Shown here: positions 4,901-59,350 of the stretch, piece by piece | Numbering within the stretch: the first letter of the stretch is position 1 | Layout of the letters: the number at the start of each line of letters is the position of its first letter | Source: Lepidodermella squamata | Taxonomy: Eukaryota; Animalia; Gastrotricha | Length of the DNA stretch: 64,000 bases | Assembly: GCA_047495785.1 (NCBI GenBank) | Contig: JBLDXI010000010.1 | Coordinates: forward strand, 1,736,001 to 1,800,000 | Direction: 5' to 3' | The notes under the pieces: generated by a model | The model's input: only the letters and a program-made list of their open reading frames with translations | Databases searched by the model: none | Told to the model about the DNA's origin: nothing | Made by a program: the position numbers and the translations under genes

Positions 4901-5067
4901 GCTGATTTAGTGCTGATTTTGCTACCTGTTAAGATATCTGAACTTCTTTGGTTACTTTTGTAGCTCGACTTAGAATTTCTAATTAAAAAAGGTGGCAATA
5001 TCCGTCATAAAAACTATATAAACTCATTGTTGGCTTGCGTTCATTTTAGAAACGCTGTTGACATAAA

Positions 5068-38316: not shown

Positions 38317-41300
38317 ATGACTAAAATTAACTGGCTTTGGATTCCCATCTTGCAATCAGCGTTGTTGTTTTCTGCAGGTAGTAATGCACGAGTATCAGTA
38401 CGTGTTTTGAAATTTACTCCGACAGCCGCCGAGAATAGATGCTCCAATTACTCGTCTTCAAGTGATTCTATTCTGGAATTCGCTTCATCCAAGAATCCAG
38501 TTCCAAATTCCACAAAAGTTGACGTAACAATACCGAACTGCGTTGATGCAGTGGGAAAATCACGAATTCTGGGCTGCTATAATTCTTCAACATACACAGC
38601 GCAAGGGGAAGATCTTTCATTCAACGATTTCACCATATTCTTTTACCTCTACCCGAATAATGCCTCTGGCACGATACTGCAAGCTGATAACAAGATATCT
38701 ATATCATACTTTAAAGTTGAAGACGGAGATAGTATTGGTCTTTCGCTTCGCTTTGGGCCTGGGTATGCTTCTCCTCTAATTTATGAGGGTTTGGCTGTTT
38801 TTAAAACTTGGAACTTCATCGCCATAACAAAACAGGGCTTTGACGTTTTTCTTTACCACAAAATCGCCGGATATAATATGACAGCGATTGCAGACATAGC
38901 AATAACCTTCAACCAACCGACTTCACTAGTAATCGGCACTTCGGATGAATTAAGTCGAGATCGCATTTTCTGCTTCCACATGTTTGATAAATCTTTGTCT
39001 CCAATGGAAGTCCGAAACTTGGAAGCGATGTGCAAATATAATTTGGATGGCACATGTGACATTGCCGATAGTTTCGAGCTTAAATTTGCTGATATGAGGA
39101 CCAGGAATTCTCTGCTACCTAAATGGTACCTTACTGAGGCTTTCTTTCCGTTGGACAAGTTCAGCTTTAATCGGAACATAATTCTTCCAAACGCTTCTCA
39201 CAGCTTTGAGCCTAGCTGTGGTTACATGGCTAAACTTGAAGGTGATGAAGATATTTTTGGATGGAAGACTTTGTCAAATTGTCTTTACGAATCTCCGGCG
39301 GAAACAATACGTCCGAGACCTAGAAATATCGCCGATTTTATAGATAATTTATATTCCTTTTCGATAACCCTCAGCTTCTACCGCATCACCTCAGGCTTTC
39401 ACCTGTTTACGCTTCGGCCGATTTGGCTTGAAGTCAGGGTATACCCCGGAACTATCAGCATAACTAGTCCGCAGTTGAATGCTCGTATCAAAACTTTGTC
39501 ATTGCCGAGTTCTGGTGACGGCAAAGGATGGGAATTCATCGCTATTACTTATGATTGGATGACAGGGAATTTCAAGGTATTCTACCAAACTACTGCTGAA
39601 CCTATTTACAATACTGCGATCAATTTAACGAGCGGAATTAGCGAAGAAGCTTTCACTTTTCGATTGGGAGAACAGCCTTCTACGGTTGCTTTTCACTGCT
39701 TGACGATTCATTATACCGATTTAACGAAAAATGAGCTTGATCATGTCAGGCAAACTTGCTCGAACAGGCGATTGAAAACACACGGAGAAAACATCACCTC
39801 ATTTGCATTCACGGTTTTGAATGATACAGTTGAAGACATTAAATTCAAGCCTTTCAGTCCTTTCCCTGGGAATTCGATAGATGAAGTAAGTATCTTATTC
39901 ATAATTCTTTTCGTAATATTTAAGTGAATAATTAACAGAGTAGTACCGTTGATACTATTGTTGAGTACTTCCCTATCATCGGGAAATACCGCTGGCTGGA
40001 CGCAAACGTAGCTTGCATGAATAACAAAGCTCAGCTAGCTGTATTTTTCGACCAAAACGAACGGCAACTTGCCGTTAAAACCACTCAGAATTCTAATGAG
40101 AAGTTTTGGATCGGCCTGTATCGCAACTTCAAAGGAGTGCGGCAGTTTCGCTGGCTCGATGGATCAGAGTATGAAAATTCCTATCATCTGGAACCGTCTG
40201 ACCCTTCGAAGCCACAGGGCAGCTTTTATTGTGGGGCGATATCGAAGGGGTACTTATCTGCTTCGGAATGCGATGAAGAGCTCATCAGTGTACTCTGCGA
40301 AAAAAGGTCGGAAAAGCCGCGAAAATGGCCGAACGGGCCAGATATAGCTTCATTCGTGTTCGCTGGAATTCTCTTCGCAATCGGCTTATTTTTCATTGCC
40401 GTAACAGCTTTCGTGGTGTTTAGAATGAAAAGCAAGCCAAAGGTAACCAAAAATGCCTTTTCGACTACTCCGATTTTAAACATTTTCTTCGTAGGATCTA
40501 GACGAAGATGAACCTAAGGAAAAGTTCAACATTACACTGGACCACGTTAAAATATCAGACAATTTACTTGGCAAAGGAGCCTTTGGACGAGTTTTCTTAG
40601 GATCTATTCTGCTGAAGGATGGCAAAACTACAATGAACGATGTAGCGATCAAGATCTTGCCAGAAAATGCAACTGACACGCAGCGCGAGAGGTTTCAGAT
40701 GGAAATCGACGTAATGATAAAGATGAACTTGAAATGTCGAGAGAAGCATGAGCATGTGATATCAATGATCGCGTGTGTTCAACGTGGCGGCAAGAACAAT
40801 CCTAACAATGAGATGGCAATTGTTATGGAGCATTGCCAATATGGATCGCTAGACCGAGTTCTGACTTGGATGGAGAAGCTGCGTCGGACGAATTCCAATC
40901 AGTTGGCTAATATTTTGAAGGCTAATCAAACAGGCGATGCTAGCTATCCAATACAGCTACGGCAGCATGAATCAATTTCTGAGAAAACATCACTCATATC
41001 GATATCTACTAACAGTAGAAATTCTAATCTGTTGAGCCGGATCCCTGAGGAATCTTTGACAAGCACAGATTCTGATTCTGGTTACGTGGTTGCAATGAGA
41101 GGGCTAATGCATCTTGAACCTATTTCTGAACAAACTTCCCTTTTATCAACTTCAACAGAGACCAGTTTTCTGTCGAGGCAAAGTTCAGTTAAGATAATCG
41201 ACAGATTGGAGGCAACGCTTCTCCTATATGCCGAGCAAATCAGCCGGGGAATGGAACATCTTGCCAAGCATAGTTTCGTTCACCGTGATTTAGCAGCAAG

Positions 41301-41806
41301 AAATATTCTTGTTGCGAGGCTGGATTGCGTTAAAATTGCGGATTTCGGCCTAAGCAGAGATATATATTTGGACAAAATGTACTCTTCAACTCAAAAAGAT
41401 CGCATCCCCATCAAATGGCTTGCCCCAGAGTCTTTGGAAACCGGGAAATTCAGCATAGCCAGCGACGTGTGAGTTAATGAAACTTAAATCTTGCATCTTG
41501 TAAATCAATGCTATTTGATTCAGATGGTCATTCGGAGTATTACTATGGGAAATCGCGACGTTAGGCGAGAGGCCGTATGGTTACTATAATTGCGACATGC
41601 TGAAATTGTTACAGGAAGGGAATCGTCTCGAGAAGAAAAGCGGATGTTACTGCTCTGATGAACTGTATGCAATAATGACTCGGTGCTGGAGTTTCAACCC
41701 ACAAGATAGACCTTCCTTCCCTCGATTAGTTAGAGAGATAGCTGAATTAAGAGCTAAGAACAAAAATGAATCTGAGTCAGTGCGCGAAGTAGGATCCTCG
41801 AGCTAG
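38317..41806 (+). CDS. Receptor tyrosine kinase with two LamG/pentraxin-like domains, a C-type lectin domain, TM and a split kinase (exons 38317-39885, 39939-40442, 40495-41468, 41524-41806; 1109 aa)
   Basis: Signal peptide; WNFIAIT and WEFIAITYD (LamG-like); FWIGL...FRWLDGS...CEK (CTLD); TM; LGKGAFGRV, VAIK, HRDLAARN, DFG, IPIKWLAPES, SDVWSFG. Three in-frame GT-AG introns. Confidence 0.88.
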
Positions 41807-41933
41807 GAGGTATTTTCGGGCCCAAATTTTATGACCAAAAGGTCCCCCCTGTGGTTTTTTGGGGGATTTTCCACTTTGGCCTTGTGAACTGGGGGGTACG
41901 ATACCCCTCATTCCCCCCGTACTTCGCGCACTG
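41778..41933. mobile_element. MITE (156 bp) inserted in the RTK stop codon
   Basis: 14-bp TIR cagtgcgcgaagta / tacttcgcgcactg with agt on both flanks (possible 3-bp TSD). Confidence 0.75.
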
Positions 41934-42430
41934 AGTAGACATCAAGTTATATTGCTTGAATATTTAGAAATAAAGCTCGGCGTGCAATGATCAACTGCCC
42001 TCATCCGTCAAGCTGCCTGTCGAATCCAGGCACCTTATTGAGATTTTTTGTTCACATTGACAAGAGAGGGAAAAATTGTGCTTCAATTGTTGATAGAATA
42101 GAGAATTCGGTCACTTCAGGTTCATCGTAATTACAAATGTCTCCAAATGAGAGCAGGTGTTAAACAATAATGTATATTATTTATCATATGAATCACGAAT
42201 TGTTCGTTACCAGTGATGTTATTTTCCTCACTAAATTCCCTTATCATTGACCAGCGTTTGATGTTGAGCGCAAATTAATTATGGGTAAGTTACAGCGCTG
42301 TTTTGAATAAGTTTTAAAACCTCTGCGCTCTATGTGGTCCATTTTTTAGCACAAAAATAAATTACGTACCATCGCCGGATATATAACGTGAGTGCACTTA
42401 GTCAGTGCAAATCATTTTTTCGCTGCTGAT

Positions 42431-43975
42431 ATGAAACTTTCAACCAAACTGTTGTGTTGCATACGGAACGAGTCGCTCGTCGATTTTGAAGTAACTCGGA
42501 TTTCAAAGGAGCCACCACGCTACCGATATCAGTTTAAGGACTGCATAGATTTTGTGGCGACAGCGGCTCCCGATGATTATCTAATTCATACTGATATTGA
42601 GCAAGTATTTGTAGTGGACTTGGCTGGAATTCAAGTTTTTGACACCCTCTTTATGGACAAATTGAGAAATAGTGCATCTAACGAAGAAATCGCTACAACC
42701 AACTACTCTCGTCTAAACTTCAATGAGTTGAACAGAAAGCACTGCGAATTCAATGTAACTTACGGCCACCCTTTCCATCCGCTTAACAAGCTCCGGTGGC
42801 CACAACCGAATGGACTGGAGTTCAAGAAAGAAACACGACTAGCAATAGGTAAATTTGTTGCTAACGAGGTTTCAGTTGCTGGAGACTATGTGAAAACAAT
42901 CCAGGTCTTGCTGCCGAACGAATCGCCAGAATTTGTCTACATTCCTGTTTTGAAGGATCAATTAAAGCTCATTGAAGGCAAACTCGCACTGGAACTCACA
43001 GAGTCCGAACTGGATTGCTACGCCCATTGCAATGTTCGAACGGTCACATTGATTCCGGAAAGTCTCAGAATCGACCTCAAGTTAAGTCTGACTCTGCAAA
43101 TTACAAGCGCAATGAGAGATTTCTCGCTGGGAAATGCTGTTAACGGCACGCGCCTTCGGTCAAGTTTCATGAAAATCGAACCTGAGGTGAACGATTTCAT
43201 CCAAAAACAAATCGATCCGCGGCTGAAGTTTCGCTTCCTCTATGAAGTTGGTGCTGCGTTTTACAATCCTGATATTGTTTGTATCATTCGGCAAGTTCCT
43301 GAGCTAGAACCCGGCGAGGTTCTGGTACCGCTTGCATTTCTCTGCGATGTGGAGCCAAATTCTAGGCAATTCAACTACTGCCGCTATTTCACTCGAGAAA
43401 TGGCAAGTGATTTATTCGGCATGCTCGTTTCGTTCGGTCTTTACGTCTTGGTGAATCATAACTGCGCTCTTGAGATTCACGGCCAGAATACATTGGCTAT
43501 TTTGGATGTGCCAAATCGTAGAATCACCGGGCTGGCGTATCGAGATTTCGGTGGTTGCGCGTTTTTAGCCAAATCTTGGGCCGATGCGATGATTGCTGAC
43601 CATACAGTTATCGTCGAAACAATTGATGAAATGATCAACCTGTTCTGCCATGCCCTTAGCATGCAGTTGATCATTCTCGATAGGACTGCGCTTATTCCCG
43701 ACTTCAGACGCTTTGCAGCTGATACGGTGAATCGATGCTTGGATCAGCTGCCTGTAAATCAAGTCAACACGGCATTGCGGCTGAAACTGTCGCAACCTCG
43801 AATTCCGATGAAGGCCTTGGCTTCAATGGCAGCGAAAGCCGACGGGTCGAAAATGTATTGCCTGGTGCCCAATATCCTCTACCCTCTCAAAACTTTCAAT
43901 AGTGTAGTGAAGAGGATTCCAATCAAAATGATGCATCAAAAAGATGATCAAAATGTTCAAATTCGGAAAAGCTGA
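42431..43975 (+). CDS. IucA/IucC-family NRPS-independent siderophore (NIS) synthetase, intronless (514 aa)
   Basis: Family motifs in the correct order: GHPFHPLNKLR, NVRT, LKLSLTLQITSAMR, LEIHGQN, YRDFGG, PMKALASM...PNIL. TATA-like atatataa about 45 nt upstream. Confidence 0.85.
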   Translation: MKLSTKLLCCIRNESLVDFEVTRISKEPPRYRYQFKDCIDFVATAAPDDYLIHTDIEQVFVVDLAGIQVFDTLFMDKLRNSASNEEIATTNYSRLNFNELNRKHCEFNVTYGHPFHPLNKLRWPQPNGLEFKKETRLAIGKFVANEVSVAGDYVKTIQVLLPNESPEFVYIPVLKDQLKLIEGKLALELTESELDCYAHCNVRTVTLIPESLRIDLKLSLTLQITSAMRDFSLGNAVNGTRLRSSFMKIEPEVNDFIQKQIDPRLKFRFLYEVGAAFYNPDIVCIIRQVPELEPGEVLVPLAFLCDVEPNSRQFNYCRYFTREMASDLFGMLVSFGLYVLVNHNCALEIHGQNTLAILDVPNRRITGLAYRDFGGCAFLAKSWADAMIADHTVIVETIDEMINLFCHALSMQLIILDRTALIPDFRRFAADTVNRCLDQLPVNQVNTALRLKLSQPRIPMKALASMAAKADGSKMYCLVPNILYPLKTFNSVVKRIPIKMMHQKDDQNVQIRKS

Positions 43976-45034
43976 GGGAGTGCCTGGGATTGTTTCTGCT
44001 AGGCCGTGTCCCTTCCTTTCGTTTCCTGGAGTCTCCCGTGCAGAGACTGCGTTTTAAAATCCTAAAAGCTGTGACACTTATTCCGGTGAAACCAGAAAAT
44101 GATCTGAATTTCGCAATCTTAAGCATTGTCCAACTAATCGGGCGACCACGTACTATAACAGTGGAAGTTCCTAAAACCCCCAGTTGAGACGCTTAACTTA
44201 ATAGTACCTACATTTCGATGAAAAATTCCCTTCCTTCTGACAAGAAATTGTATTTATTATTAATTATTGCGCTTATTTTTTGTTGCATTTGATGAAATTT
44301 ATGTACTGAGCATCAATGAGTTTATTCCGTGCTGCGATTTCAATTATTATGCGAAAATAAAAAAGAGAAAACCATTCGTCGTAACAATTGCAGTGTGGTC
44401 TAAAACAAGTGAAGCTACGATTCAAGATTCTCGAATCGTATGTAGTTGCAAATTAAACTGATAATGGTACATGACCTTGCAGCTACGCAGTAGTTCGAGT
44501 ACATTTTATCATATTTTTTTCATTTTAGAATTTGTGTTTTAATGTAAATGGAATTCATTGAACAAACTTCAGAAACTATTTTATCGAGGTTCAAACTACA
44601 GCGGTTAAGAGTTACCTAAATAAATTACCGGTAATGAGACACACAGTAAGAGTACCAATGTAGTTTAAACATTTATAGCACACTGATTGTAGGAATTAAT
44701 TTTAAAAATTAGTCATCCTCTAATAAAAGTCGGATAAGATGAGATTTCGAATAGTTTTGAAAATATAAGGGTAAATACAACAATTTAGACACTACGGTAA
44801 TTGCCGCATTGTGGAACCCATTATCCGACGCAATTATTCGGGAAAACAACCGTTTTATTAATTCAACCACTTGCCAAGCTGAACAAGCAGCACGAAAGAT
44901 GAGACACAACACTTAATCGTTCAATTCTTAGGTTAAAGCTAGACGACATAAATTGGACAATAATAATATAAATTCTATATCCACAAATAAAGATGCAATT
45001 GAAATGTTCAATCATGGCTTAACGACAGATTGTT

Positions 45035-47308
45035 TTAAGAAGCGTTTCCGCGTGCCGAATAAGCGGCTTTAAACGATATTCCGGAGACAGTTATCGAGAG
45101 CATCAGGTCTATAATTGCCAGAGCAAGTCGCTGGTCGACGGAGCTGTCCAAAAGAATCACAATCAAGCAAGACGCGGGTAGAGTCGTTAACAGCTCGGCA
45201 AGAATGGCAGTCATTTGCTTGTAGTCTGTCATCGATAAATGACGGCCACTTTGCTTCAAACCGAACATTGCGAACGCTGCGAAGATCAAAATTATGAGAT
45301 TAACTGCCAGCATTGCGATTATCCAATAGGCCTGATTTGGCGAGGTACAATCCATGACGAAATACTCAACAAATTCATCGGCGGACCGAAATCCTGTTCC
45401 TGCAACCGCGTTGTAGCACGAGAGTGACTCTGTAACAAACATCCAGAGGCACAGAATGAGGCATATCAAAAGAGAAAACCCGGCCGAAACTTTAATGAAC
45501 TCTCCTGATTTGAGGTTAGGAGCCTCGGTTGCTACCGTCGATGCTGGTCTAACGGATGGGGCAGCCTTGCTGGTCCTATTGGTTGTATGATCCAGATGAG
45601 TCGCATTGCCAGATTTGGCCTGGTTCGGACGATGAGGTATCACTAGATTGCAGTGCAATATATGTGAGGAAACGGCAGAAATCAGAGTTGAAGCTGATAT
45701 CGCCTGTAAGAAGTATCTCGATGTCCAAAGAGCCTTGGGTGAAATGGAGGTCTTCAAACTGTGAACCACTGCAGCTGAATTTAGCAGGATACAACCGAAA
45801 AACACCGCACTTTCAAGGAACTTTCGCTTATGATTGAAGTAGATAAACGCAACAATCTGCAGGGAACCGAAAAGGGCTGCAATTGTTGATATGGTAATCA
45901 TCATTGCATCAGTGGAGTCAAGGATTTCAATCAGCCTGGTTAGCATATCCTTAGGAGGGTTGCCGTCCAATGTTGGCCACGGGAAACTTGGTACCAAAAG
46001 AGTCAATTCTGCGTTATCATATTCGTCGGTGGAATTTGGCTTATCAACGCTGACGGCTTTCATCAGTTTCTTTCCAGACATCAGGCCGATGAAATAGGGC
46101 ATTTCCAACAAGTTTCCATTACTATCATAACTGACCTTGACCGTTCGAAGTGGCTTGTAACTCAACGCGACAATACTGGTTTTCACTGCCTTGATTATAA
46201 CATCTGGGGATTGTTGGAAGTCCCGTAATGACATGTTTTTCGCCGCTAAATCTCGCTCAGCCCTATCCAGGGCAATGACAGATTGCATAACAGTGTCATG
46301 GCATACCCACAGGTAGTCATAGTCGGATGTTCTGATGCCGCGGGTTCTTTCTTGGAAAACAACATCGAATTCAGACTTTCGATATCCGAAATCAGTTGGT
46401 AGATTCTGCTGGTCATCTCCATCAATCGTTCCAAGAACTATTGTCTGCTCAAATTGCATGGCAATTTCGCTCCTCGTGCAAGAAACGTCTATTCCTGCGA
46501 AACTATCCTTTAGAGCTAGAATTCCGGTATCAAGAGCGAGTAGTAGGAACTTTTTCCCGGTTATCCCGGCCTGGTATAGGCGGCATAAGACTGGAAGGAC
46601 GAAAACTCGAGAAGATAGGTAAATCAGTATTATTCTCAAATCTTTCGCCTTCAGATTTCTCGCAGTTTCCAAATCGTAATTCGTAGCCGTATCAACGACA
46701 GGTATGCTTATTCCCTGAGACTGAGCGACGTTCAGAAAATGAAGTGCCCCATTGAAATCGTTCGTATTATCCGGGTTGGTGATCATAGCCAAATTCCGCC
46801 ATTTTCCGATAGTTTTGATAAATTTTACGTAGCCAAAGTTCTTATTCACCATGGTTGTCAGAGCGAGGTATAAATTAGGAAATCGCTTCCGGTCTGATAG
46901 AATCGGATGAGTACACGTCTGCGAGATGCTGACGAAGTTGAGGTGGTGTAAGAAACCTCCTAAACCTTTGCACCCATTCGAGTTCCATGGCCCGACCGTT
47001 ATTGGAGATGGGAAGATAGTCGGGTCGTCTCGGTTGTAATCGCGGTAGTAACCCATGAAAGCCGTCGGGGCGTTGTTCCCTCCAAGCTTCTCATCGCCTT
47101 CGAAAATTCTGATGTCATAGTCAGGCAAATATTTCGTTTGGTTATTCGCATATTCTGCGGCTAGAGAGGAGGCGATTCGACACTGCGTTGGGACGGCTGG
47201 CTCTGTGCCTGTTATGCGGCTTTGAACCAACAATGAAAGTTTGAACGGCTTGCTGTTCGCGAGGACGAACAGTTCAGCAGCAAATAGAATCCTTAAAACT
47301 AAAGTCAT
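45035..47308 (-). CDS. Intronless class C GPCR, GABA-B-like (757 aa)
   Basis: Signal peptide, YLPDYDI and SDRKRFPNLY flytrap motifs, WPTLDGNPPKD linker, seven hydrophobic segments. Distant paralog of 17129-19549. Confidence 0.85.
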   Translation of the reverse strand: MTLVLRILFAAELFVLANSKPFKLSLLVQSRITGTEPAVPTQCRIASSLAAEYANNQTKYLPDYDIRIFEGDEKLGGNNAPTAFMGYYRDYNRDDPTIFPSPITVGPWNSNGCKGLGGFLHHLNFVSISQTCTHPILSDRKRFPNLYLALTTMVNKNFGYVKFIKTIGKWRNLAMITNPDNTNDFNGALHFLNVAQSQGISIPVVDTATNYDLETARNLKAKDLRIILIYLSSRVFVLPVLCRLYQAGITGKKFLLLALDTGILALKDSFAGIDVSCTRSEIAMQFEQTIVLGTIDGDDQQNLPTDFGYRKSEFDVVFQERTRGIRTSDYDYLWVCHDTVMQSVIALDRAERDLAAKNMSLRDFQQSPDVIIKAVKTSIVALSYKPLRTVKVSYDSNGNLLEMPYFIGLMSGKKLMKAVSVDKPNSTDEYDNAELTLLVPSFPWPTLDGNPPKDMLTRLIEILDSTDAMMITISTIAALFGSLQIVAFIYFNHKRKFLESAVFFGCILLNSAAVVHSLKTSISPKALWTSRYFLQAISASTLISAVSSHILHCNLVIPHRPNQAKSGNATHLDHTTNRTSKAAPSVRPASTVATEAPNLKSGEFIKVSAGFSLLICLILCLWMFVTESLSCYNAVAGTGFRSADEFVEYFVMDCTSPNQAYWIIAMLAVNLIILIFAAFAMFGLKQSGRHLSMTDYKQMTAILAELLTTLPASCLIVILLDSSVDQRLALAIIDLMLSITVSGISFKAAYSARGNAS

Positions 47309-48897
47309 TTTTTCTTGTCTGTAAAACAGGGCGAAACTGTAAGATATTGTCCGCCGGTAAGATTTATGCTAAATATGTGTTAAAACGGCTCCGGAAAATA
47401 TTCTACAAGTATTGACTTTCTAAAATTAAAAGACACTATTAGCGAATGCTATAAGCGACTTTGTACCGGATAATTACGGCGCGAGGATTTTCCGCTGATT
47501 TTACCTAATTTTTGCACTTACGACATATTTAATTGCAATTTTTTCTGAGTCGCGGAGGTTGGCACAGCCTCTTGCCTTTCAGAAAACAAGAACTGCAAAA
47601 AACAATCTGAGTTGAGCGAAATTTACGTGGGAAATAAGTTTTCTGTGGAAGCTGCGGAGTTTTCCGCTATTTTGGGACAGCCTCAAAGCTGTTTGAAATT
47701 AGAAGAAAAATCAAATTAAAAGCCGGTTCCAAACAGTCTGCTCGTGCTTTGCAGAATTTCGCATGATTTTTCAGACATTTCAAGCAATTTGGCCTGCTGC
47801 ATTTAAAAGATTGAAGAATCGTGACAGCAGAAAGTGCAGCTGGCGCGGAAGTGAATATGTTGTTGACAGAAATTCGAGCTGTTACTCAATCGCCGCAATG
47901 CTAATTCTCCATTACGTTACGTCAACAAAGGGCGATGACTTCCGATGAAAGTGCGATGGTGCACGGGAAATGAATCGCCACAGCTTGTGTCTCATTTTTC
48001 AACAGTTGATGAATGAACTGCAAGATACAGTCAACTACGCGGGAATAAGCCTATTCAGCCTATTTCAGGCATATGGGAACTTTGGCAAGGGGTGTGTTCA
48101 AAAAGTCTCAGAGCTTCAGAACGCTGTTCTTTCAGAATTACTCGATAATTGCGTTTTTTAATGTTCAGAGCGATTATTCGCATTGTTTAGTTTCAGAGGA
48201 AAGGGACACAGATGCTATTGATTACGCTTTCAGGCGATTTTTTAATGCTCAGAACGTTCAGTGAGGGACAAGCATTGTTCGAAGTTTCAGGCTGCTCGAG
48301 CAGTCTGAAACTTTCCCTGATTACTCACGTGCGTCGTGATTAGTCACAATGGTTCGATATGAATTTTATTTTTATCCATTTTTTGACGGCAAAGCGTTTA
48401 TACGTCTGCAAAGTGGGAAAATTATTCGGAAACCTTGCGGAACACCTTGGAAGCACATTTCTACTTCACAGCTATTAAAAATTGATCAATTTTCAAGTTT
48501 GAATAAATGAATTTCTTTAATTAATCAATGCAAAAAAATAGCACATGAAACGCCGAATGGTACCACTTCTTCCTTTCCCCTTTCTCAGGAAAACACATAA
48601 GGCTCAGGTCAATTTTTTTTTCCAAAAATTGAAAATTAAATTAAAAAATTAAATTAAAAATTGTGGGCGGCATCACACATTTTCAATTTTACAACTGCTA
48701 ATTTTCGAAGCCTTCCCAAAAAAATTTCAAAAATACCTTTACTTTTATCGGGAGGGTGATAGCTGCAGCTTTCAATTTAAAATCAAGAGTCGTTTGATGA
48801 ACAATTCCCAAAAATTCATTCAGATCGAGACCGATTCCAAACTTTCTCGCAGCATGTATAATTTATGCCGATCAAATCGCGCCGAGACTGTGGAGGT

Positions 48898-49404
48898 CTA
48901 GATTCTAGATTGTTCTCTGTCGTCGTAAACCGAAAAAATTCTCACATAGTCGCCAGCAACTGAAACATCCTTTGCTTCCAGTCGACATATCGCTAGCCGC
49001 GTGTCTTTCTTGAATTTCAGTCCGATAGGCTGCGGCCATCGGAGTTTGTTAAATGGGTGGAAAGGATGGCCGTGAATTACGTGGAATTCGCAGTTCTTTC
49101 TGTTTAGGTCATTGAAATCTAGCCGGGAGTATCTTGTCTTTGCAATGTCTTCATTAGCCGCGCTGTTTCTCAATTTCGCCATGAAGAGTTCGTCAAACAA
49201 CGAAATTCCAGCCAAGTCCATTGCAGATACATGCTCAATATCGGTATGAACGAGATAATCACCTGGAGCAGCGGACGCTACAAAGTCTATGTAGTCCTTA
49301 AACTGATATCGGTATTGTGGTGGTTCCTTTGAAATCTGAGTTACTTCGAATTCGACGATGGACTCGTTTCGGATGCAACACAGTAGTCTTGTTGAAAACT
49401 TCAT
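48898..49404 (-). pseudogene. 3'-truncated paralog of the IucA/IucC synthetase (about 155 homologous codons)
   Basis: Collinear with the first about 155 aa of 42431-43975 up to VAGDYV, including GHPFHP, then unrelated sequence. The 5' leader is also homologous. Confidence 0.8.
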
Positions 49405-49988
49405 AGTTGTAGCTAAAAAAACGATGCGCTCTCACTAAGTGCAACTCTGGTATTTCCAACTAGCTAGCCGTTCATAATGTCTCGGGATTTAAAAAAAAAA
49501 CTAAGCGTAGTTTGGTTTTCATGGCTGAATAGTATCATGAAAAAACTTCACTGCTGCGTTATACTAGTAAACAAGTCAGCAAAATGTCCTGAATATTTCC
49601 ACCACTGATGAATGATAACAGAATTCTGCAAGCCAACTAATCTGAACTGACATTGGACAATTGCGGCATCAATATCCTGATGAATTGAAATAAATTTGAT
49701 TCATGAAAGCATAAAGAGCAGAATCTTCCGTGGCTGTAAGCAATGGTGGCCTATCGTAACCTAGTGAATCTTCAGGACTGGAATGAAATTTCCAAATCAC
49801 TAAAATCACTAAAATCGATCATTCTGTGACCACTTAACCTGCTTTTATGTGGTATAACAATAATACATTTTATTCTTTCCACTTGTGCAACGAGTTTTAA
49901 GATACTTTGAGATTAGAGTCTGGTTATCGTAGCATCCTTATATGTTTGAGACCATGGATCCTAGAACCACGCCCAGAAAGAGCTGTTC

Positions 49989-51218
49989 TCAAGGTATAGC
50001 ATTGATCATCTTATGAATGTAAATCACGCTAGTGAAAAGGAGAACGAGCAATGTTAGCGACAAAACGCCGATGTCCAGGAATCTTACAGCCGATATGCCG
50101 AACCTTGTACGTTCCTTCGATCCCCACTTTGTCTCCGCAATCGTGCAAACAAAAAGCATATATATGGTCACAAATACACATGCAGCCATCTGAATTTCAA
50201 TCAACGTAATGATATGTACTGGCTCTGAAGTCTGCGGAATCTGCTCGAAAACAATCGAGAGAAGTACGAAAAAAGCCAATACAACTGTTATGCAGAACAT
50301 GGGCCGGTCAGGGAACTCAGGGTTCATGATGAAAGCTGAAAGCTGGAGGACCACCATAGCAGCCAGCGGTAAAAATATAATGCCGACGTAGTATTCGTGC
50401 TTTCGTTGAAAAACCAATCTGAACTTGATTTGTTGAAAAAACCCGATGGTTCTCACAGCGATTTCAGTCGAGGTGTTGAATTCCGCCGCTATTTCTGACC
50501 AAATGCTGCTTTCGTCGAGAATAATTTGGCTTGTATCGATTAGTGGCAGCTTGACATTTAAATAATTTGATGGAGTTGTGAACTCCAATACGATAGAGCA
50601 AAACATTTTATCGAACGGGAAATAAGTTAGAGCGAAGCCTTCGCATGATGTTTCGATGAGGACATCCCCGGAATATAGCCCATTAATGAATTGGAGCGTG
50701 CCGTGGAATGAGACGTCTTCGTCAAGTTTGTTGAACCATGTGGCGTCATTTAAAGCGTTCAAATGTATGGCTGTTGGAGACCACGTTTCAGCTTTGGCAC
50801 GCTTGAAATCAATTGCATATTGATGATCACCAAAATCCAAGCCTTTGCAGCCTATTTCAGGCATTTGCCAAGATATCGAAACTTTCGCAAGTGCCGAAAG
50901 GCTGGTCAGGGAAAATTGCAAGACTTACTTCTTCGTCTAGCAGAAGGTATCTTACCTTTGCTGCAAATCATCGATGTTTTTGATGTAGTAGATGTAAAAA
51001 CTCATCGAAGCTTCGACCGGCAGTAAATCTGACTGGTTACGTAGTAACAGCTCTGCGATCAGGTTTATCGAGGTCGCCAACTTACAGGTCCCATTGAAAA
51101 ATGCATCTTGAGCTAAGTCAAAACGCAGCTGGTCTTTCTCCACATTTGAAACGAGAGCGGAGCTGGCTGTAACTTTCAAAAGTACTAGAAACAGCAGCAT
51201 GGTGAAGCGAAATATCAT
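49989..51218 (-). CDS. Divergent Cys-loop channel subunit, family B gene B1 (exons 51218-50956, 50901-49989; 391 aa)
   Basis: Signal peptide, Cys-loop CEGFALTYFPFDKMFC, four TM with M2 PDRPMFCITVVLAFF, 54-nt intron. Confidence 0.88.
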
Positions 51219-51635
51219 CAAAAATTCATCGTGGGTTAGGAATTGTGATTACAGACTGTTTACATTTCATTATTTAGCTTCCTCTATACCTTCAACGGCA
51301 ATATTCAATATGTTCAAGCTCATCGATTTTATTCTCCGGCGACCTCCGATTTTTTATATTGAGTTTTTTAGCTTTTTGTTATATGGAGTGGGGGCGGGAA
51401 CTCTCCAGTCTATGACGTCGTCCAGCATTTTCTGATTAATCGAAACTTAACCCCGGTATTCCTACACATTTCAGAATCATGATGATATTCCACAGAATTT
51501 TTCACGCATCGAACAACACTGCTATAAAAAAAGGGGGAGTAACGAGCTATTCAAGTCAGGGAGGGAGAAGCGGCAAATTCAAGGTCGTCGTTTCTCTGAT
51601 GGTTATTTCAGTTTGATAATGAATCCGAAGTGGTT

Positions 51636-52883
51636 TCATGGTATGGCATGCGTCATTTTCGCAATTAAGAATACGTCAGCTATCGACGCAGCCCAACAAT
51701 CGAAACCATAATAACAGCCAGGTCCAATAGGCGAACTTTAGACAAATGCAGAATTCCACTTTTCGCTGAACCCCACTTCGTTGATGCGATCGAGCATGCA
51801 ACTAACATATAGGCTGTCACTAAGACGCAAGCAGCCATTTGGATTTCGATCAGCAAAATCAGGTAAACCTGTTCTGAAGTCTGCGGTATCTCATCAAATA
51901 CGATCGACAGCAGCACGAAAAATGCTAACACCACCGTCATGCAAAAATTAGGTCGGTCGGGAAATTCGGGGCTCATGATGAAAGAAGAAAGCTGAAGGAA
52001 GACCATGCCGCCAAGGGGTAGAAAGATCATTCCGACATAATATTCGTGCTTTCGTTGAAAAGCCAGCGTGAATTTAACTTGTTCGAATTCACCCATAATT
52101 CGATTGATCATACCACGAGATGAGTTGAACTCAGACGGCAGAGCTTGCCAGATGCTACCCTCATCCAATATTTTTTCTGGGTATTCCAGATACATGCTTT
52201 GGGCTCGAACGTGATCAGCAAGGTTATCGAGTTCCAGCAAAATCGAGCAAGTCATTTTATCGAATGGAAAATAGGTCAGCTGGAAGCCTTCGCAGGAAGT
52301 TTCGATAAGAACTTCGTTTGTGAACATGGCCTGCACAAACGTTTTAGTAGCGTTGAATTCTACCTCATCAGACAGTCTGGTCGGCCAATTCGCGTCTCTT
52401 AACGCATTGAGATGAAGCGTCTTGGGATACCAAGATTGATTACTTGGCTTTCTGAAACGTGTAGAAATAGCGTTGCCTTTGCTGTTATTTGCCTGTAAGC
52501 TTTTACAGTGGCGAACTTCCGGCAAGCGCCAACTAATAGTAAATGTTGTTAGCACCGATAAACTGAAAAGGAAAGAAAAGGAAGGAATAAAACACAGGTG
52601 AGTTCTTTCTATTGGCCTACCTTTGCTGCAAATCGCTGATTTCTTTGATACCGTACATGTAAATAGAAAAGTTGACATATATTGGTAACAAAGTGTCGTA
52701 GTCTTCAAAGAGGTTGAGCTCCTGAATTATGTCGGTAGACTTTGCCAACGGACATTCCGAATTAAAAAACTTGTTCTCCAAAGTAGCGCTTCCTAGTTCT
52801 ACTGTGGCCCCGGCATTTATCGTTGTTGCTCGTATCAGCGTAAACGAAAGAAAAAGGCTTGAAAGCCATATATTTACTGACAT
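51636..52883 (-). pseudogene. Cys-loop subunit B2 with a 2-bp frameshift in M4 (exons 52883-52621 and 52562-51680 as read; ancestral stop at 51636)
   Basis: Extra CG at 51687-51688 relative to B4. The paralogous tail SIADVFLIAKMTHAIP* continues in another frame. Could be an allele or a sequencing error. Confidence 0.7.
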
Positions 52884-53295
52884 GCTGCTTTTGAAACCAA
52901 ATTTGTCGAATGAAGCACTTCAAAAAATGTCTGAGTTTACTGTTATAATCGTTCATTTTTATTTTAGTGAGACACTATGCAATCAGGAAAACGCAGTTGC
53001 CTAATCATTTGAGTAACGAGAAGCAAATAACAATTCACTCAAAGAAAATTGCCTAATTTCTCCCGAAATACTGTTCATCCTTAGGCCTAGGGTATTTCAC
53101 CAATCACGCGATTTCAGAGCTACTCTTAGCAGATTGTTTACTTTCTAAATGCTGAATCGGCATCTCAAAGCTGCTGTTAGACCTAGACATAGACAAAACT
53201 AACTGTGAACACATCATTATTAATCCTCAACGCTTTCGCATTTGTGGCAATAACATGCACGATGGTGATTGGTATTATAACATATCTAGCTGCTA

Positions 53296-54515
53296 TTACA
53301 AACACTGCGTCATTTTCGCAATAAAAACTACATCCGAAACGGAGAGACCGAGAACTAAAACCAGAATAAAAGCCAAATCAAGCAGTCGGACATTTGACAA
53401 ATGCAGAATCACACTCTCTGTCGCTCCCCATTTCGTCACGGCAATGGCACATGCGAACAACATGTAGACAGTTACAGCGACACACGCTGCCATTTGTATT
53501 TCGATCAGCGTGATAAGATGAATCTGCTCTGATGTTTCCGGTATCTGGTCGAAGACAATTGAAAGCAGAACGAAAAACGCCAGCACAACTGTGATGCAGA
53601 AGGTTGGCCGGTCGGGGAACTCAGGGCTCATGATGAAAGCTGAAAGCTGAAGTAAAACCATAGATGCAAGGGGTAGAAATATGTTGCCGACGTAGTACTG
53701 GTATTTCCGTTGAAAAACTAACTTGAACCTGTTTTGCTCGAATTTACCAATACTTCGGTTAACAATAACAGTCGTAGTCGAGAATTCAGAAGGCAGAGCC
53801 TGCCAAATGCTGCCTTCGTCCAGTATCTCGTCTGGGTGGTCTAAAAAAAGATCAACAATCTTGATGTAGCTGGTAGTGCTCAGCATTTCAAGCGCAATCG
53901 TGCAAGTCATTTTATCGAAGGGAAAGTATGCCAGTTCGAAGCCTTCGCAAGACGTTTCGATTAGAACTTCATAGCTCACAGACGCTTCGACTTCCACTTT
54001 CGAAGCGTCGAATTTAACCACCTCCGCCATTTTACCCGGCCAATTTGCGTCTTTCAACGCATTGATTTGGAATGCGTTCGGGAACCAAGTTTGCGATTTC
54101 GGCCTGGTGAAAGCCGTGTATAACGATCCGCCGTTATCGGCCTTAGCTTGAACGCCAACGCATCCGAACTTGGGCATATCCCATGTTACAAAGAAGGTCG
54201 CCAGGGCAGATAAGCTTAATATTATGAATTCAAAGAGGATCAATTATTATTCACGAAGGTCTACCTTTGTTTCAAATCGTCTATGTCTTTGATGTCGTAA
54301 ACATAGATTGAAAGTGACACATATATTGGTAAAGCCTCGTATTGCCATTGTAAGCTTGTTTCCTGAAGCAAATTTCGGGCCTTCGCCAGCACGCATTTCG
54401 AATTGAAAAACTCGTCCTCCATTGCGGTGTCTTTAAGCACCAATGCAGCTCGGGCTTGCAGGGCCAGGATATTCATTGAAAGTAATACGAGAAAATGATG
54501 AAATGCATGAGCCAT
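53296..54515 (-). CDS. Cys-loop subunit B3 (exons 54515-54265, 54214-53296; 389 aa)
   Basis: Signal peptide, CEGFELAYFPFDKMTC, four TM, 50-nt intron at the family-B position. Confidence 0.88.
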
Positions 54516-54794
54516 GTCGAATTTCGAGGTGAAAATCAGGCAAAGCCTTTATAAAGCCCCTAGTTTGAAGTTACTGTTTATTTTAAATTTTAAACGAAAA
54601 GCTATCCAATCAGGAATCAGGTAAATAGATGTAAAGTGGCCAAGTAACGAGATACAAACAGAAAATAGGCCATAAACATTGACCTGAAATGACAATTAAT
54701 GATTATGAAAATGCATATAATGTTTGTTTCGAAATGAGGTGTATCGATTATTAAATTAGTTTCTAGTTTTAATTGCCGATTATTTCCAGCCGTT

Positions 54795-55331
54795 CTACTT
54801 CTCCTTCGTTGGAACCTGGCCAGGCTCTTCAATTCCCAATCGTAGAGTTATATCCTCGGGGATGTCCATCTTCCCCTCGACGTGGATGTGCCCAGTTTTC
54901 TTCGCCATCATCTCCTCCGCACTTAGAGGTCGCTGATTAGATCCATCCGTTCCAAGGAAAGGATTCGGGACCAACAGCTGGCTAGGCCTGTGTTGCCCTG
55001 CTGCCATTCCAGCAGCCGCTAATCGCTGCTTCTCAATCATCTCGTCAATCTTCTTCAAGTACTCCTTGCGAGCAACTTCGTGCCTCAGACGATGCCGGAT
55101 TCCCCGAAGCGTCTTAGCCCTGCCTTGGTCTCGAATTCGCTTGACCAAAGCACTTCGATTGTGCCTGAGACGTCGGATATCTCTAGACAGTGTCGTATAG
55201 TCCAAGCAAACGATTAATCCGATGAAGAAGCCAAGAATGCCAAGAATAATAGATCCAGCTGCAGCAGCATAGTCTGCCTCGACAATGTCCTGCTTCCTCG
55301 ATTTCGTGTCATCTAACTTCAATAGACCACT
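54795..55331 (-). CDS. Orphan terminal exon of a single-pass membrane protein
   Basis: ttccag acceptor, 178-codon open frame with TM (AAGSIILGILGFFIGLIVCLD) and a basic cytoplasmic tail. Upstream exons were not identified. Confidence 0.55.
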   Translation of the reverse strand, partial: SGLLKLDDTKSRKQDIVEADYAAAAGSIILGILGFFIGLIVCLDYTTLSRDIRRLRHNRSALVKRIRDQGRAKTLRGIRHRLRHEVARKEYLKKIDEMIEKQRLAAAGMAAGQHRPSQLLVPNPFLGTDGSNQRPLSAEEMMAKKTGHIHVEGKMDIPEDITLRLGIEEPGQVPTKEK

Positions 55332-55373
55332 CTGGAAGCATTTCAAATTTCAAGCGAACGAGTGCCAGGGTGT

Positions 55374-55621
55374 AAAAATGGTTTAAAAGGAGGACTCGAA
55401 CTCCGGACCGTTGGATATCGGCCTATGACGCGAGAACACTGAGCAACAGTGCTAGGTCATGGTAGTCATCCTCTTCCGCCAATTTATATATAACAAACGA
55501 ACGCTAAACATATGCGTTTTCCGCCAGTCTCAGATATGAAGGCTCCTATTGTATAGTTGATCCAACCCATTGTTCAAATCCTAAAGGTCCCGAGTTCGAA
55601 TCCTCCTTTTACACCATTTTT
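55374..55621. repeat. Back-to-back pair of tRNA-like elements
   Basis: 36-bp inverted repeat with 3 mismatches (55374-55409 / 55586-55621). Each arm has a GTTCGA B-box followed by an oligo-T run. Confidence 0.6.
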
Positions 55622-56122
55622 TTTTCTTTCGTCAGTTTTTTCTATGGGATGACTAAGTGACGAATAACGACGAAACGACGAAACGACGAAAAAACAACGC
55701 CTCAGAACTAGCTATTCATACCACGTGATCACGTGGACTTTGATCCTGCAATACGGAAGCACAATGCCCCCTCCCCCTCGCAGGGCCAAAATCTCAATAA
55801 CCGAAAATTAATAGATATACAGTATTTAGTTTCCTATACCTTCAACGTCAATATGTTTCAGCTAATCGATAATTCACTGGCGACCTCCAATTTTCACAAT
55901 AAGGTTTTTTGCCCCTGTTATAATGGAGTGGAGGTGGGAACTCCAGTAATCGATTAAATGAAACTTAACCCTAATATCATCACAGCACAGTATTCACGCA
56001 TCGAACAACATTGTTATCAAGAAAATGGGAAGTAACGATAAATTTCAGTTAGAGAAAAGCGAAAATTTCAAGGTCCTTGTTTCTCTTAGGATTTTTAGTT
56101 AGTTGATGAATCTGAAGTGGTT

Positions 56123-57361
56123 TCATGGTATTGCCTGCGTCATTTTCGCAATTAAGAATACGTCAGCTATCGACAGCATAAAAATCGAAACCACAACAAC
56201 GGCCAAGTCCAAAAGGCGAACTTTAGACAAATGCAGAATTCCACTTTTTGCTGAACCCCACTCCGTTGCTGCGATCGAGCATGCAACCAACATATAGGCT
56301 GTCACTAAGACGCAAGCAGCCATTTGGATTTCTATCAGCAAAATGAGGTAAACCTGTTCTGAAGTCTGCGGTATCGCGTCAAATACGATCGACAGCAGCA
56401 CGAAAAATGCTAGCACTACCGTCATGCAGAAATTCGACCGGTCGGGAACATCGGGACTGATGATGAAAGCTGAAAGCTGTAGGAAGACCATGCTGCCAAG
56501 GGGTAGAAAGATCATGCCGACGTAGTATTCTTGTTTTCGTTGAAAAGCCAACATGAATGCAACTTGTTCGTAGTCACCCATAATTCGACTGACCATACCA
56601 CGAGATGAGTTGAACTCCAACGTCAGAGCCTGCCAGATGCTACTATCCTCCAATATTTTGTTTGAGTGGTAAAGAGTCAGTCTATCGACTTTAACGTCAT
56701 CGGCAATGTTATTGAGTTCCAGCGTAATCGCGCAAATCATTTTATCGAACGGAAAATAGGCCAGTTGGAAGCCTTCACAGGAAGTTTCGATAAGCACCAA
56801 GTTTGAGTACACCGCTCTCACAGCCTCCCTAGTAGCGTTGAATTCTACCTCATCAGACAGCCTGGTCGGCCAATTCGCGTCTCTTAACGCATTGAGATGA
56901 AGTGTCTTGGGGTACCAAGTTTGATTACTTGGCTTTCTGAAACGTGTAGAAATTGTATTGCCTTTACTGTCATTCGCCAGTAAACCGTGACAGTGGGCAA
57001 AGTCTGACAAGCTCCATCTTAGTTCAAATGTTACAAGCACAGACAAACTGAAATAACAAAAAGGAGATAGAACATAGCTTATGTTCTTTCCAAAGTTATA
57101 CCTTTGCTGCAAGTCGCTGATTTCCTTGATGTCGTACATGTACATAGAAAAGTTTACTCGTACGGGTAAAGCGTCGTATTCCTCATGGAGCCGGATCTCT
57201 TGAATAATGTCAGTGGACCTGGCCAACGGACATTTGTAATTAAAAAACTCATTTTCCAAAGCAGTGCTTTTTAATTCTACTCTGGGTTCGGAATATATCG
57301 CTGTTGCTTGTATCAGCGTAAACGAAAGAAAAAGGTTAGAAAGCCGAAAATTTACTGACAT
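56123..57361 (-). CDS. Cys-loop subunit B4 (exons 57361-57102, 57047-56123; 394 aa)
   Basis: CEGFQLAYFPFDKMIC and four TM. The 54-nt intron is in frame and stop-free, so the ORF track reads through it. Confidence 0.88.
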   Translation of the reverse strand: MSVNFRLSNLFLSFTLIQATAIYSEPRVELKSTALENEFFNYKCPLARSTDIIQEIRLHEEYDALPVRVNFSMYMYDIKEISDLQQRYNFGKNISYVLSPFCYFSLSVLVTFELRWSLSDFAHCHGLLANDSKGNTISTRFRKPSNQTWYPKTLHLNALRDANWPTRLSDEVEFNATREAVRAVYSNLVLIETSCEGFQLAYFPFDKMICAITLELNNIADDVKVDRLTLYHSNKILEDSSIWQALTLEFNSSRGMVSRIMGDYEQVAFMLAFQRKQEYYVGMIFLPLGSMVFLQLSAFIISPDVPDRSNFCMTVVLAFFVLLSIVFDAIPQTSEQVYLILLIEIQMAACVLVTAYMLVACSIAATEWGSAKSGILHLSKVRLLDLAVVVVSIFMLSIADVFLIAKMTQAIP

Positions 57362-57754
57362 GCTGCTTTTAAAACCGAATGTTTAGAATGAAGGGCTTTT
57401 AAAAATGTCTGGTTTGCTGTTATAATTGCTTGCTTAATTTCAGTGAGAAGCTATACGTAATGCAATAAGCAAATCGGAGTTGTCTAATCATTTGAGTAAC
57501 GAAAAGTAAATAAAAATTCGCCTAAAGAAAATTGCCTACTCATTGTACATCCTTAGAGTAATCGCATGATTTAAGCTGTTAAAACTATTCTTAGCACGTT
57601 GTTTATTTTCTAAATGCCGAATCAACATCTCAAAGCTGATTTTAGACCTATACCTGGACAAGCTAAACTAACTGCGAACGCCTCCTTGCCTTATATTTTT
57701 TGGCAACTATACGTATGATGGTGATTGGTATGCTTATAAAATTTCTTGCTGCTG

Positions 57755-58805
57755 TTATATACAGTGTGTCATTTCGAAATATAAACTACATCCGGAATAG
57801 AGAGCATATTAAAGCTGTGAGGCGCTTTGTGTCAGAACCCTTCAGGCGACCTCAGCGACGCGGGGCGTATTGTTCGCGAACTTAGAGTTCGACAAAATCC
57901 CTGGCTGTGACTTTGATTTGATTTGATTTGATTTCTGTAGTAAATCGCAGTTCGGTGTAAATCAATCATTTAAAATGAAATCGCCCAAAAATCCATGGTA
58001 AATCCATCAAATCAAATCATCGGACCAATTAATATCAAATCAAATCAAATCTTTCGCATAGAAAAACATGAGTATTAAAGACCATTTCTAAGGATTCTTT
58101 CATATTTTAAGGTTGGTTTTGGGAGAATGAGTCTAAAAGGGGTTAAATTGCTCCAAAATTTGAAAAATGTTGTTTTCGAGGCAAATGGTGGTTCTCATGG
58201 TTAGTAACAGGAGGAATTCCTAGAGTTTTGAGTATTCTAAATCAGCAGTAAATCAAGGGGGCTAAATCAAATACAATCAAATCATCGTGAAAATGGCCTA
58301 AATCAAATCAAATCAAATCAAAGCCTCTGATCCCTGGGACAAAGGGCCCAGTACCCCGATGGTAGAAGAGGGTGATGACACCAAAGTTGTCTTCGCACTA
58401 ATTCGGCCGAATCTTATATACAATTGATAAGTTGAGTTTTCGTGTTAGCTTCTTGCTAGCTGAACCAATTGACTTCAATCATTTCGGGTTCGCAATATAT
58501 ATGAAAAACTAACATGGGTGATTAATTGGTGTAAATTGTGTTATTCGTCTAATGAATTATCGTTCCAATATTTCGGGAAAGAGTGGATTTCTTCGGCGAA
58601 GAAAGAGGAGTTATTATAATCTGTTACACCTGCAGTGAATCGGACTGGTTACGTAAAAGCAGCTCTGCGATCAAGTTTTTCGAGGTCGCCAACCTAGAGG
58701 TCTCATTGGAAAATGCGTTTTGCGTCTTGAATCGAGAGCTGAGCTGGCTGCAACTTTCACTAGAAGGACTAGAAACAGCAGCACGGTGAAGCATAAAAAA
58801 ACCAT
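57755..58805 (-). pseudogene. Family B remnants: B3-like 3' tip (about 57755-57805) and B1-like exon 1 (about 58620-58805) around a repeat element
   Basis: 57755-57805 encodes PDVVYISKMTHCI* and follows a spacer homologous to 52960-53295. 58620-58805 aligns by eye with 51010-51245, with a deletion. Confidence 0.7.
57905..58336. mobile_element. MITE-like element with (ATTTG)n / (CAAAT)n subterminal repeats
   Basis: ctttgatttgatttgatttg on the left and aaatcaaatcaaatcaaag...atccctg on the right, in inverted orientation. Confidence 0.6.
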
Positions 58806-58999
58806 CTTTGGTTAGGAATTATCATTAGCTGGTATGCCCGGGCGCCGGGCCAGCCTTTCGTTTTGTTTCACTCTGCTGAAATTACTCAAAACGCGGCAAC
58901 CACGTAACTTGACAGAATCATTCAATAAGTACAAAGTAAATGCTAGGCACCTCTAAGTGATATAATGCATCTTCGTCTCGATACGCAGTGTCAAAGTCC

Positions 59000-59350
59000 A
59001 ACGCCGCCGTTCCACAGGTGACAGCGTTGCGCATACTCGGCTCACATGCTCATTTTCGATGAAAAACTCACTTGGAAGCCTCACATAGACCACGTCCTCC
59101 AACGGTGCGAGCGTAATTTGTCCTGGTTTCACACGGTCGTGCATAGTCCGGGCCTGTCTCTGAGATGGCGCCGCGCTACTTACCTTTCACTCGTCCGCTC
59201 CATTGCAACCTTCCGGGCTGTTGCCTTCTCCTCCGCCGCCAAGTCGCAGCTTCGCCGTCTGGAGGTACTTCTAAACAATTGCCTTCGGGCTATTCTCCGC
59301 GTTCGACTGAACAATCGCGTCCGCATCTCTGCAAAAAAATCATCGTGAAC
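59000..59350 (+). mobile_element. LINE ORF2 fragment (post-RT region)
   Basis: LIFDEKLTWKPHIDHV...YLSLVRS...LRRLEVLLNNCLRAIL, typical of non-LTR retrotransposons. Confidence 0.8.

Follow-up and report, generated by a model that had tools for sequence, protein, structure and literature searches.

Synthetases of the nonribosomal peptide synthetase (NRPS)-independent siderophore (NIS) family use ATP and magnesium to adenylate a carboxylate, usually citrate or a citryl-amide, which is then coupled to an amine, and they thereby form the amide bonds of polycarboxylate or hydroxamate chelators. AsbB is a type C NIS synthetase that acts on citrate/citryl-spermidine and spermidine, and does so within the six-gene asb operon. 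Animals use transferrin, ferritin and lipocalins, or take up microbial chelators, and to our knowledge they do not make the classical siderophores of microbes. One NIS synthetase is enough for Rhizopus delemar, and likewise for Ralstonia pickettii, to make rhizoferrin (PMC7857480). Here we describe a stand-alone NIS synthetase gene at positions 42431 to 43975 (plus strand) of a 64,000-nucleotide stretch from the gastrotrich Lepidodermella squamata (contig JBLDXI010000010.1, positions 1,736,001 to 1,800,000), hereafter called the window, to which all coordinates refer unless a contig is named.

An earlier note on this DNA had reported an intact siderophore synthetase gene of the IucA/IucC type in an animal-like genome, and that observation as a whole is confirmed: Pfam, a family profile, an AlphaFold2 model and Foldseek agree that this is an intact member of the NIS synthetase family. 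We consider it fairly probable, if well short of certain, that the gene is functional, resident in the chromosome, transcribed and constrained, that its product is likely a citrate plus polyamine enzyme, and that it was gained by an old horizontal transfer. Literature searches on rotifers, bdelloids, Metazoa and horizontal gene transfer, whose coverage did not extend to subscription journals, brought up no description of an NIS synthetase in an animal. An expressed and maintained synthetase of this kind in an animal chromosome would make the endogenous synthesis of polycarboxylate chelators testable with one recombinant protein and, if the reading is true, would extend the foreign-looking biosynthetic genes of small invertebrates to a further class of enzyme.

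A short-form NIS synthetase

The gene is a full-length, intronless open reading frame (ORF) of 514 codons and a stop, encoding a short form of the IucA/IucC plus FhuF-like architecture. Counted from a GTG codon the ORF extends from 42392 to 43975 (plus strand); the ATG at 42431, which is also the start of a truncated paralogue discussed below, yields the 514 residues. Five motifs that the earlier note had read in this order are all present: GHPFHPLNKLR (residues 112-122, 42764 to 42796), which contains the counterpart of the ATP-site histidine of AcsD; CNVRT (residues 200-204) and KLSLTLQITSAMR (residues 217-229), lying within 43028 to 43117 and matched through alignments with AcsD; and EIHGQN (residues 348-353) and RDFGG (residues 371-375), within 43472 to 43555, which the same alignments assign to the Mg/ATP/citrate site.

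Both domains for which a profile search had been proposed exceed the Pfam gathering thresholds. IucA_IucC (PF04183) scores 43.8 bits against a cutoff of 25, with only profile positions 113-238 of 239 matched, on residues 180-305, and FhuF (PF06276) scores 28.6 bits against a cutoff of 25.2 at residues 327-404, a marginal value for which the family profile, matching AsbB along its whole length, provides support. An exact look-up of the protein gave no record, and a word-indexed homologue search returned two distant matches only. A family profile built from 47 sequences has full-length matches to all the solved NIS synthetases, with AsbB first (1.5e-64, profile positions 11-541), AcsD (5e-44) and IucC (5e-41) following, and then DfoC, DesD, IucA, AlcC, NcdF and SbnC.

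The predicted structure agrees with this assignment. AlphaFold2, supplied with the family alignment, gave a model with a predicted local distance difference test (pLDDT) score of 90.5 and a predicted template modeling (pTM) score of 0.89, in which disorder is confined to the last 22 residues. All 50 of the Foldseek matches listed from the PDB are NIS synthetases (template modeling, or TM, score 0.66-0.77; E 3e-22 to 2e-17), a range that takes in AsbB, IucA, IucC, DesD, AlcC, AcsD and SbnC, and 59 of 60 protein-language-model neighbors are IucA_IucC/FhuF clusters. The N-terminus belongs to the fold (helix 4-13) and there is no signal peptide, so that the modeled protein is best taken to be a cytosolic enzyme.

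The active site was mapped through a printed AcsD alignment and two further alignments (A1 and A2). Residues H113, R203, T204, K217, R229 and R287 align with AcsD H170, R281, T282, K293, R305 and R369, and residues E348, H350, Q352, N353 and D372 with AcsD E442, H444, Q446, N447 and D464; all eleven are conserved. Three motifs are peculiar to the clade to which the protein belongs, namely RFLCxLxNE near the N-terminus, C-[NS]-x-R-T, and ALECHCQN. As judged from sequence, modeled fold and aligned residues the protein is a member of the NIS synthetase family, and its predicted activity is adenylation followed by the formation of an amide or ester bond.

Relatives and origin

Searched exhaustively with phmmer (E<=1e-3), 1.84 billion representative proteins yielded only 48 matches, the four best of which are unnamed ENA or Logan proteins with 29-34% identity. 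The contigs of these four closest relatives look eukaryotic. Two of the genes (on contigs L005 and L003) are interrupted by short GT..AG introns, and a third (L002) is syntenic with an 18-kb contig, L006, on which the NIS gene lies beside genes for an M17 peptidase, HSF, SMUBP-2, a UFM1-specific peptidase (UfSP), a DHHC enzyme and a USP5-like protein. The M17 peptidase encoded beside the L002/L006 gene branches outside the animal, fungal and bacterial groups, together with unnamed sequences, and a Pfam scan of the neighbors on L003, L004 and L005 gave a weak F-box/LRR signal only. Contig L006 (positions 1-18358; Logan SRR20314591) comes from the metagenome of a brackish sea-surface slick; it is eukaryotic and very compact, with almost no introns.

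The next matches are to the fungi Aspergillus, Entomophthora, Geranomyces, Blastocladiella, Dimargaris, Orbilia, Ilyonectria and Mucidula, to the rotosphaerid Lithocolla, and to a few bacteria. None of the 29 labeled matches among the 48 (18 named, 11 without an organism name) bears the name of an animal; the query is so divergent that other NIS subfamilies in animals would escape a search made with it. A scan of Joint Genome Institute (JGI) metagenomes gave distant NIS genes only, as partial matches with at most 32% identity (best E 2e-15). The earlier note had called the gene microbial-type, a description that is not demonstrated, the nearest relatives being unnamed eukaryotic contigs with no more than 34% identity.

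A maximum-likelihood tree, from which the solved, type-assigned enzymes were left out, places the query with the four relative lineages in a six-member clade (SH-aLRT 100%) on a long stem of 1.28, apart from a clade of fungi plus Lithocolla (98%) and from the bacterial groups. The query clade is deeply divergent and, in the sampling so far, eukaryote-only. It defines an unannotated eukaryotic NIS clade with a motif signature of its own that escapes NCBIfam and single-sequence PDB searches, and its members occur in metagenome assemblies, the sea-surface slick among them. The phylogeny that the earlier note had called for, against bacterial, fungal and protist NIS enzymes, returned a well-supported separate clade. 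In the approximately unbiased (AU) test, holding the query clade with the fungi and Lithocolla improved on the free quick tree by 12.6 log-likelihood units (p 0.85) and gave the best tree found, and holding it with the short bacterial forms was not rejected either (p 0.26). The query clade lies outside the fungal and bacterial groups, no donor clade holds the gene and neither grouping is rejected, so that the horizontal acquisition proposed in the earlier note is not demonstrated.

Two accounts of the origin have to be weighed. We regard an old horizontal acquisition as likely, because the gene has a patchy distribution and seems to be missing from the proteomes of named animals. The other account is vertical descent, in which an NIS synthetase of an early opisthokont or older eukaryote, with the same enzyme function, was lost in most animals. 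The AU result with fungi and Lithocolla speaks for descent, as do the occurrence of the family in chytrid, blastocladian, zoopagomycete, dikaryan and rotosphaerid lineages, the closest relatives with spliceosomal introns or amid eukaryotic genes, and the fully ameliorated composition of the gene. It would require many independent losses, and it has to accommodate the lack of any named animal among the labeled matches and the AU test that also passes the grouping with short bacterial forms; the length of the stem branch makes long-branch effects possible. We therefore think vertical descent rather unlikely, while noting that it competes with transfer over the history of the gene and leaves its enzymatic function the same.

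Predicted chemistry

The remaining 29 distinct ORFs of at least 150 amino acids in the window were all scanned with Pfam, and they consist of pieces of pentameric ligand-gated ion channels (pLGICs), class C G-protein-coupled receptors (GPCRs), kinases and lectins, or have no Pfam match. No transporter, monooxygenase or acetyltransferase is found among them, as the earlier note had stated, and the window as a whole does not have the exporter, receptor, reductase and tailoring genes that mark a siderophore gene cluster. The absence of partner genes nearby, together with substrates that are primary metabolites, makes a one-enzyme condensation of citrate with a polyamine the most likely chemistry. 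The mechanism that we propose is that a single enzyme in the cytosol would condense citrate with a di- or polyamine to give a rhizoferrin-like citryl-polyamine, with both citrate and putrescine or spermidine drawn from the primary metabolism of the animal; since these are supplied, the stand-alone gene could in principle be a complete pathway. That a stand-alone enzyme is viable in this sense, as the earlier note had supposed, is borne out by Rhizopus delemar and Ralstonia pickettii, in each of which a single synthetase makes rhizoferrin (PMC7857480).

The choice of citrate and a di- or polyamine is suggested by this single-enzyme synthesis, by AsbB as the best solved match and by the operons of bacterial relatives. 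The operons that contain two of the short bacterial relatives (P0022 and P0025) also encode a major facilitator superfamily (MFS) exporter, two spermidine-synthase-like proteins and an ATP-grasp protein, and the P0022 operon (on contig L087) alone adds a TonB-dependent receptor, together with a PepSY gene. These operons (L087:3436-11950 and L088:6001-11813) are conserved and encode bacterial short-form synthetases of 484-486 amino acids alongside two AdoMet_dc/spermidine-synthase-like genes, with the PepSY_TM gene and TonB-dependent receptor upstream in L087. From their gene content they look like an uncharacterized polyamine-citrate siderophore pathway.

The fullest form of the proposal, that the animal makes its own citrate-polyamine, rhizoferrin-like metal chelator by means of one domesticated NIS synthetase from an undescribed eukaryote-only, short-form clade spread by gene transfer, is put forward tentatively, as a reading that we hold to be less probable than not. 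A competing account retains the catalysis and changes its purpose: the enzyme would have been repurposed to ligate carboxylates and amines for a role unconnected with iron, such as handling another metal, conjugating polyamines, or making a signal or a defense compound. The extreme divergence of the protein (at most 34% identity, and no NCBIfam equivalog), the lack of uptake or export genes nearby and the position of the gene within an array of receptor genes are all compatible with such a change. Set against it are the near-complete retention of the adenylation and citrate-site residues, of which only AcsD S279 is replaced (by N201), the fact that the characterized family members named by PDB searches all make siderophores, and the operons of the short bacterial relatives, which contain an MFS exporter and polyamine-synthase-like genes and, in one case, a TonB-dependent receptor as well. 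We judge repurposing unlikely, a little more so than vertical descent, and retain citrate-polyamine condensation as the predicted chemistry.

Expression, genomic setting and comparison with known enzymes

Two sequence data sets bear on the locus, a DNA-like run (X1) and a second set from 2015 (X2), which comes from a separate study and carries a different organism label. We read X2 as RNA because its contigs carry a GT..AG-spliced kinase junction: two of them skip 41469-41523, an intron of the upstream kinase gene. X2 depth is approximately zero in the intergenic stretch 41920-42471, 9-70 across 42472-44311, still 36 up to 44311, and then 5 and 1 after 44312. Such coverage fits a separate, unspliced transcript that starts 3' of a TATATAA box at 42380 to 42386, a candidate core promoter 45 nt 5' of the ATG on the plus strand, and ends near AATAAA at 44356-44361, the 3' untranslated region (UTR) occupying 43976 to 44361. 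X2 thus covers the ORF and 3' UTR and not the intergenic DNA, and the gene appears to be transcribed, in line with what the earlier note had proposed to check. It would form a transcription unit of its own, with its own promoter and polyadenylation signal and without introns.

Beyond the downstream GPCR gene lies a feature that had escaped the earlier note, a truncated, inverted NIS paralogue at 48898 to 49443 (minus strand; found by tblastn, blastn and inspection). It is a 168-residue ORF that retains some 38 nt of the leader preceding the ATG and codons 1-159, with 73.6% amino acid and 78.8% nucleotide identity to the full copy over this length, and then diverges and reaches a stop; a homology search of 47000-50000 detected no credible trace of residues 160-514. 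At least one duplication of the gene has taken place in this lineage. Against the full copy the paralogue has a dS of 0.87, which points to a long residence of NIS sequence in this genome, and a dN/dS of 0.17, so that it either diverged mostly under selection or still encodes a selected N-terminal fragment.

Constraint is also seen in the full-length gene. The 30 best-supported differences within the ORF, a subset of all that were reported, comprise 23 synonymous and 7 non-synonymous ones, an approximate pN/pS of 0.09; with the dN/dS of 0.17 against the paralogue, this indicates purifying selection and lies far from the ratio near 1 that the earlier note had named as telling against function. 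A decaying relic, that is, an intact ORF without any remaining function, has the truncation of one copy in the window to recommend it, and is rendered very unlikely by the excess of synonymous differences, the catalytic residues that are kept (save N201 for AcsD S279), the confident full-length predicted fold and the transcript-like coverage.

The gene is a resident of the genome and not a contaminant, as is evident from its codon usage, its read depth, the TATA box, the AATAAA signal and the flanking paralogue. Its GC content at third codon positions is 0.48, and its relative synonymous codon usage correlates with that of the other window ORFs at 0.67, equal to the highest value among the native ORFs tested. 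X1 word depth is 100-180 in the NIS gene and 83-177 in the flanking kinase and GPCR genes, with 30 of 30 bins covered, and X2 contains the gene and both its neighbors at similar divergence. The gene is thus linked to host genes and host-like in both composition and depth, and the paralogue places NIS-derived sequence on both sides of an animal-type GPCR gene. That a contaminant or chimeric join has set a microbial-eukaryote gene beside animal genes is the least credible account of all, since the apparent absence of the gene from named animal proteomes and the lack of a displayed short-read contig spanning the junctions, where a high-copy transposable element breaks contigs, are outweighed by a word depth equal to that of the flanking genes, an independent 2015 data set with the same three genes, NIS-derived sequence on both GPCR flanks and codon usage like that of the neighbors.

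Two sequence types coexist in X1 over 41000-46500 of the window, one identical to the window and the other about 6-9% diverged in the contigs listed; the diverged type has the same variants as X2. They could reflect high heterozygosity, homeologous copies or mixed strains.

Several observations weigh against the reading of a functional, horizontally acquired citrate-polyamine synthetase. The protein is too divergent for NCBIfam, which gave no match and no equivalog, or for a single-sequence phmmer search of the PDB, which gave nothing at E<=0.01, and family membership therefore draws on Pfam, profiles and the predicted fold. N201 stands where AcsD has the ATP-site serine S279, with N or S at this position throughout the query clade, and the substrate type (A, B or C) is not readable from the sequence, which leaves the activity a prediction. 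No exporter, importer or reductase gene occurs among the ORFs of the window. The four closest relatives carry no taxon, 19 of the 48 phmmer matches are without a label, and the best tree found, with the query clade beside fungi and Lithocolla, also fits ancient opisthokont inheritance, which makes horizontal transfer something that we infer. As to the sequence data, the tool only guesses that X2 is RNA, our assignment following from one splice joint in two contigs and the coverage pattern; in the contigs listed the X2 copy, under its different organism label, is about 4-9% diverged from the window; none of the short-read contigs shown spans the kinase, NIS and GPCR genes; and the high-copy miniature inverted-repeat transposable element (MITE) at the upstream junction breaks contigs just 5' of the NIS gene.

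The neighbors are as the earlier note had described them, and the Pfam scan of the window ORFs confirms that the gene stands among receptor genes of animal type. Upstream lie the 3' exons of a gene for a receptor tyrosine kinase, a C-type lectin exon among them (40017 to 41806, plus strand; Pfam, the spliced joint in X2, and reading frame). The 55-nt intron of this gene at 41469-41523, bounded by GT..AG, is the one removed in X2, and its stop, at about 41806, is 625 bp 5' of the NIS ATG, close to the 600 bp first given. Downstream and tail to tail with the NIS gene, between its two copies, is a single-exon class C GPCR-like gene with an ANF_receptor domain (45035 to 47308, minus strand; ORF and Pfam), the stop end of which is 1,060 bp 3' of the NIS gene, against a first estimate of about 1 kb. 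Its 757-residue protein had no homologue at E<=1e-5 in a word-indexed search of 5.8 billion proteins and appears to belong to a lineage-specific receptor family. A similar ORF at 17129-19549 (plus strand), which scores for 7tm_3 and ANF_receptor by features, is a second single-exon class C GPCR-like gene.

The MITE-like element is 158 bp long (41777-41934), with perfect 15-nt terminal inverted repeats, an X1 word depth of 13,429 and many loose ends at both borders. Inserted at the very end of the kinase coding sequence, it supplies the final nine or so codons and the stop, and some X1 contigs skip stretches in or around it. Elsewhere in the window a dense, divergent array of pLGIC (Cys-loop receptor) genes occupies both strands of 1-40000 and 49900-61000, comprising about 15 ORFs with weak Neur_chan_LBD or Neur_chan_memb matches, many of them near or below the gathering score. 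Two ORFs on the minus strand have no Pfam match: one of 407 amino acids at 23980-25203, a composition outlier with an ORF GC content of 0.546 (0.493 over a 2-kb segment, compared with about 0.42), and one of 474 amino acids at 12470-13894, in a stretch with an AT skew of -0.22. An Rfam search of the window found nothing.

Among animals the nearest parallel is provided by the NRPS and polyketide synthase (PKS) genes of bdelloid rotifers, which are likewise secondary-metabolite-type enzymes expressed from an animal genome and which belong to a different enzyme class from the NIS synthetases (PMC11258130); the genome in question is rich in candidate foreign genes, and its description makes no mention of IucA (PMC11258130). 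Bdelloid genomes have a lower GC content than the 42% of the window. In organization the gene is most like the Rfs gene of Rhizopus delemar and the NIS synthetase gene of Ralstonia pickettii, which are also stand-alone and whose products need only citrate and a diamine (PMC7857480). Among relatives that bear a name, those nearest the query are IucC-family proteins of fungi, the early-diverging Entomophthora, Dimargaris, Geranomyces and Blastocladiella among them; they show about 26-36% identity over partial alignments, and such relatives are approximately 540-660 residues long, compared with 514 for the query. The query falls in a clade (SH-aLRT 100%) separate from the fungal one, with a sister relation preferred but not proved by the AU test, in a comparison that did not include the sequences of Rfs, FslA and LbtA.

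Of the solved enzymes, AsbB, from the petrobactin pathway of Bacillus anthracis (PDB 3TO3), is the best match both by profile (1.5e-64) and by fold (TM 0.75-0.77). It has in common with the query the motifs GHPxHP, SxRT, K...TSxxR, ExHxQN and (R/K)DF, while the two are only 16% identical in structural alignment, the query is some 80-100 residues shorter, and its gene stands alone whereas that of AsbB is borne on an operon. AcsD, IucA, IucC, DesD and AlcC, which are of types A and C, share with the query the three-domain fold and the ATP-, Mg- and carboxylate-binding residues at 13-17% identity, and are encoded in operons together with tailoring and transport genes; asparagine in place of AcsD S279 and the RFLCxLxNE, C-[NS]-x-R-T and ALECHCQN motifs are found on the side of the query only, and its 514 residues compare with 575-620 in the solved NIS enzymes. 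The gastrotrich protein thus differs from known members of the family in its host, its short length, its divergence (at most 34% identity) and the motifs that appear specific to its clade, and it shares with them the predicted fold and nearly all of the residues by which they bind ATP, magnesium and citrate.

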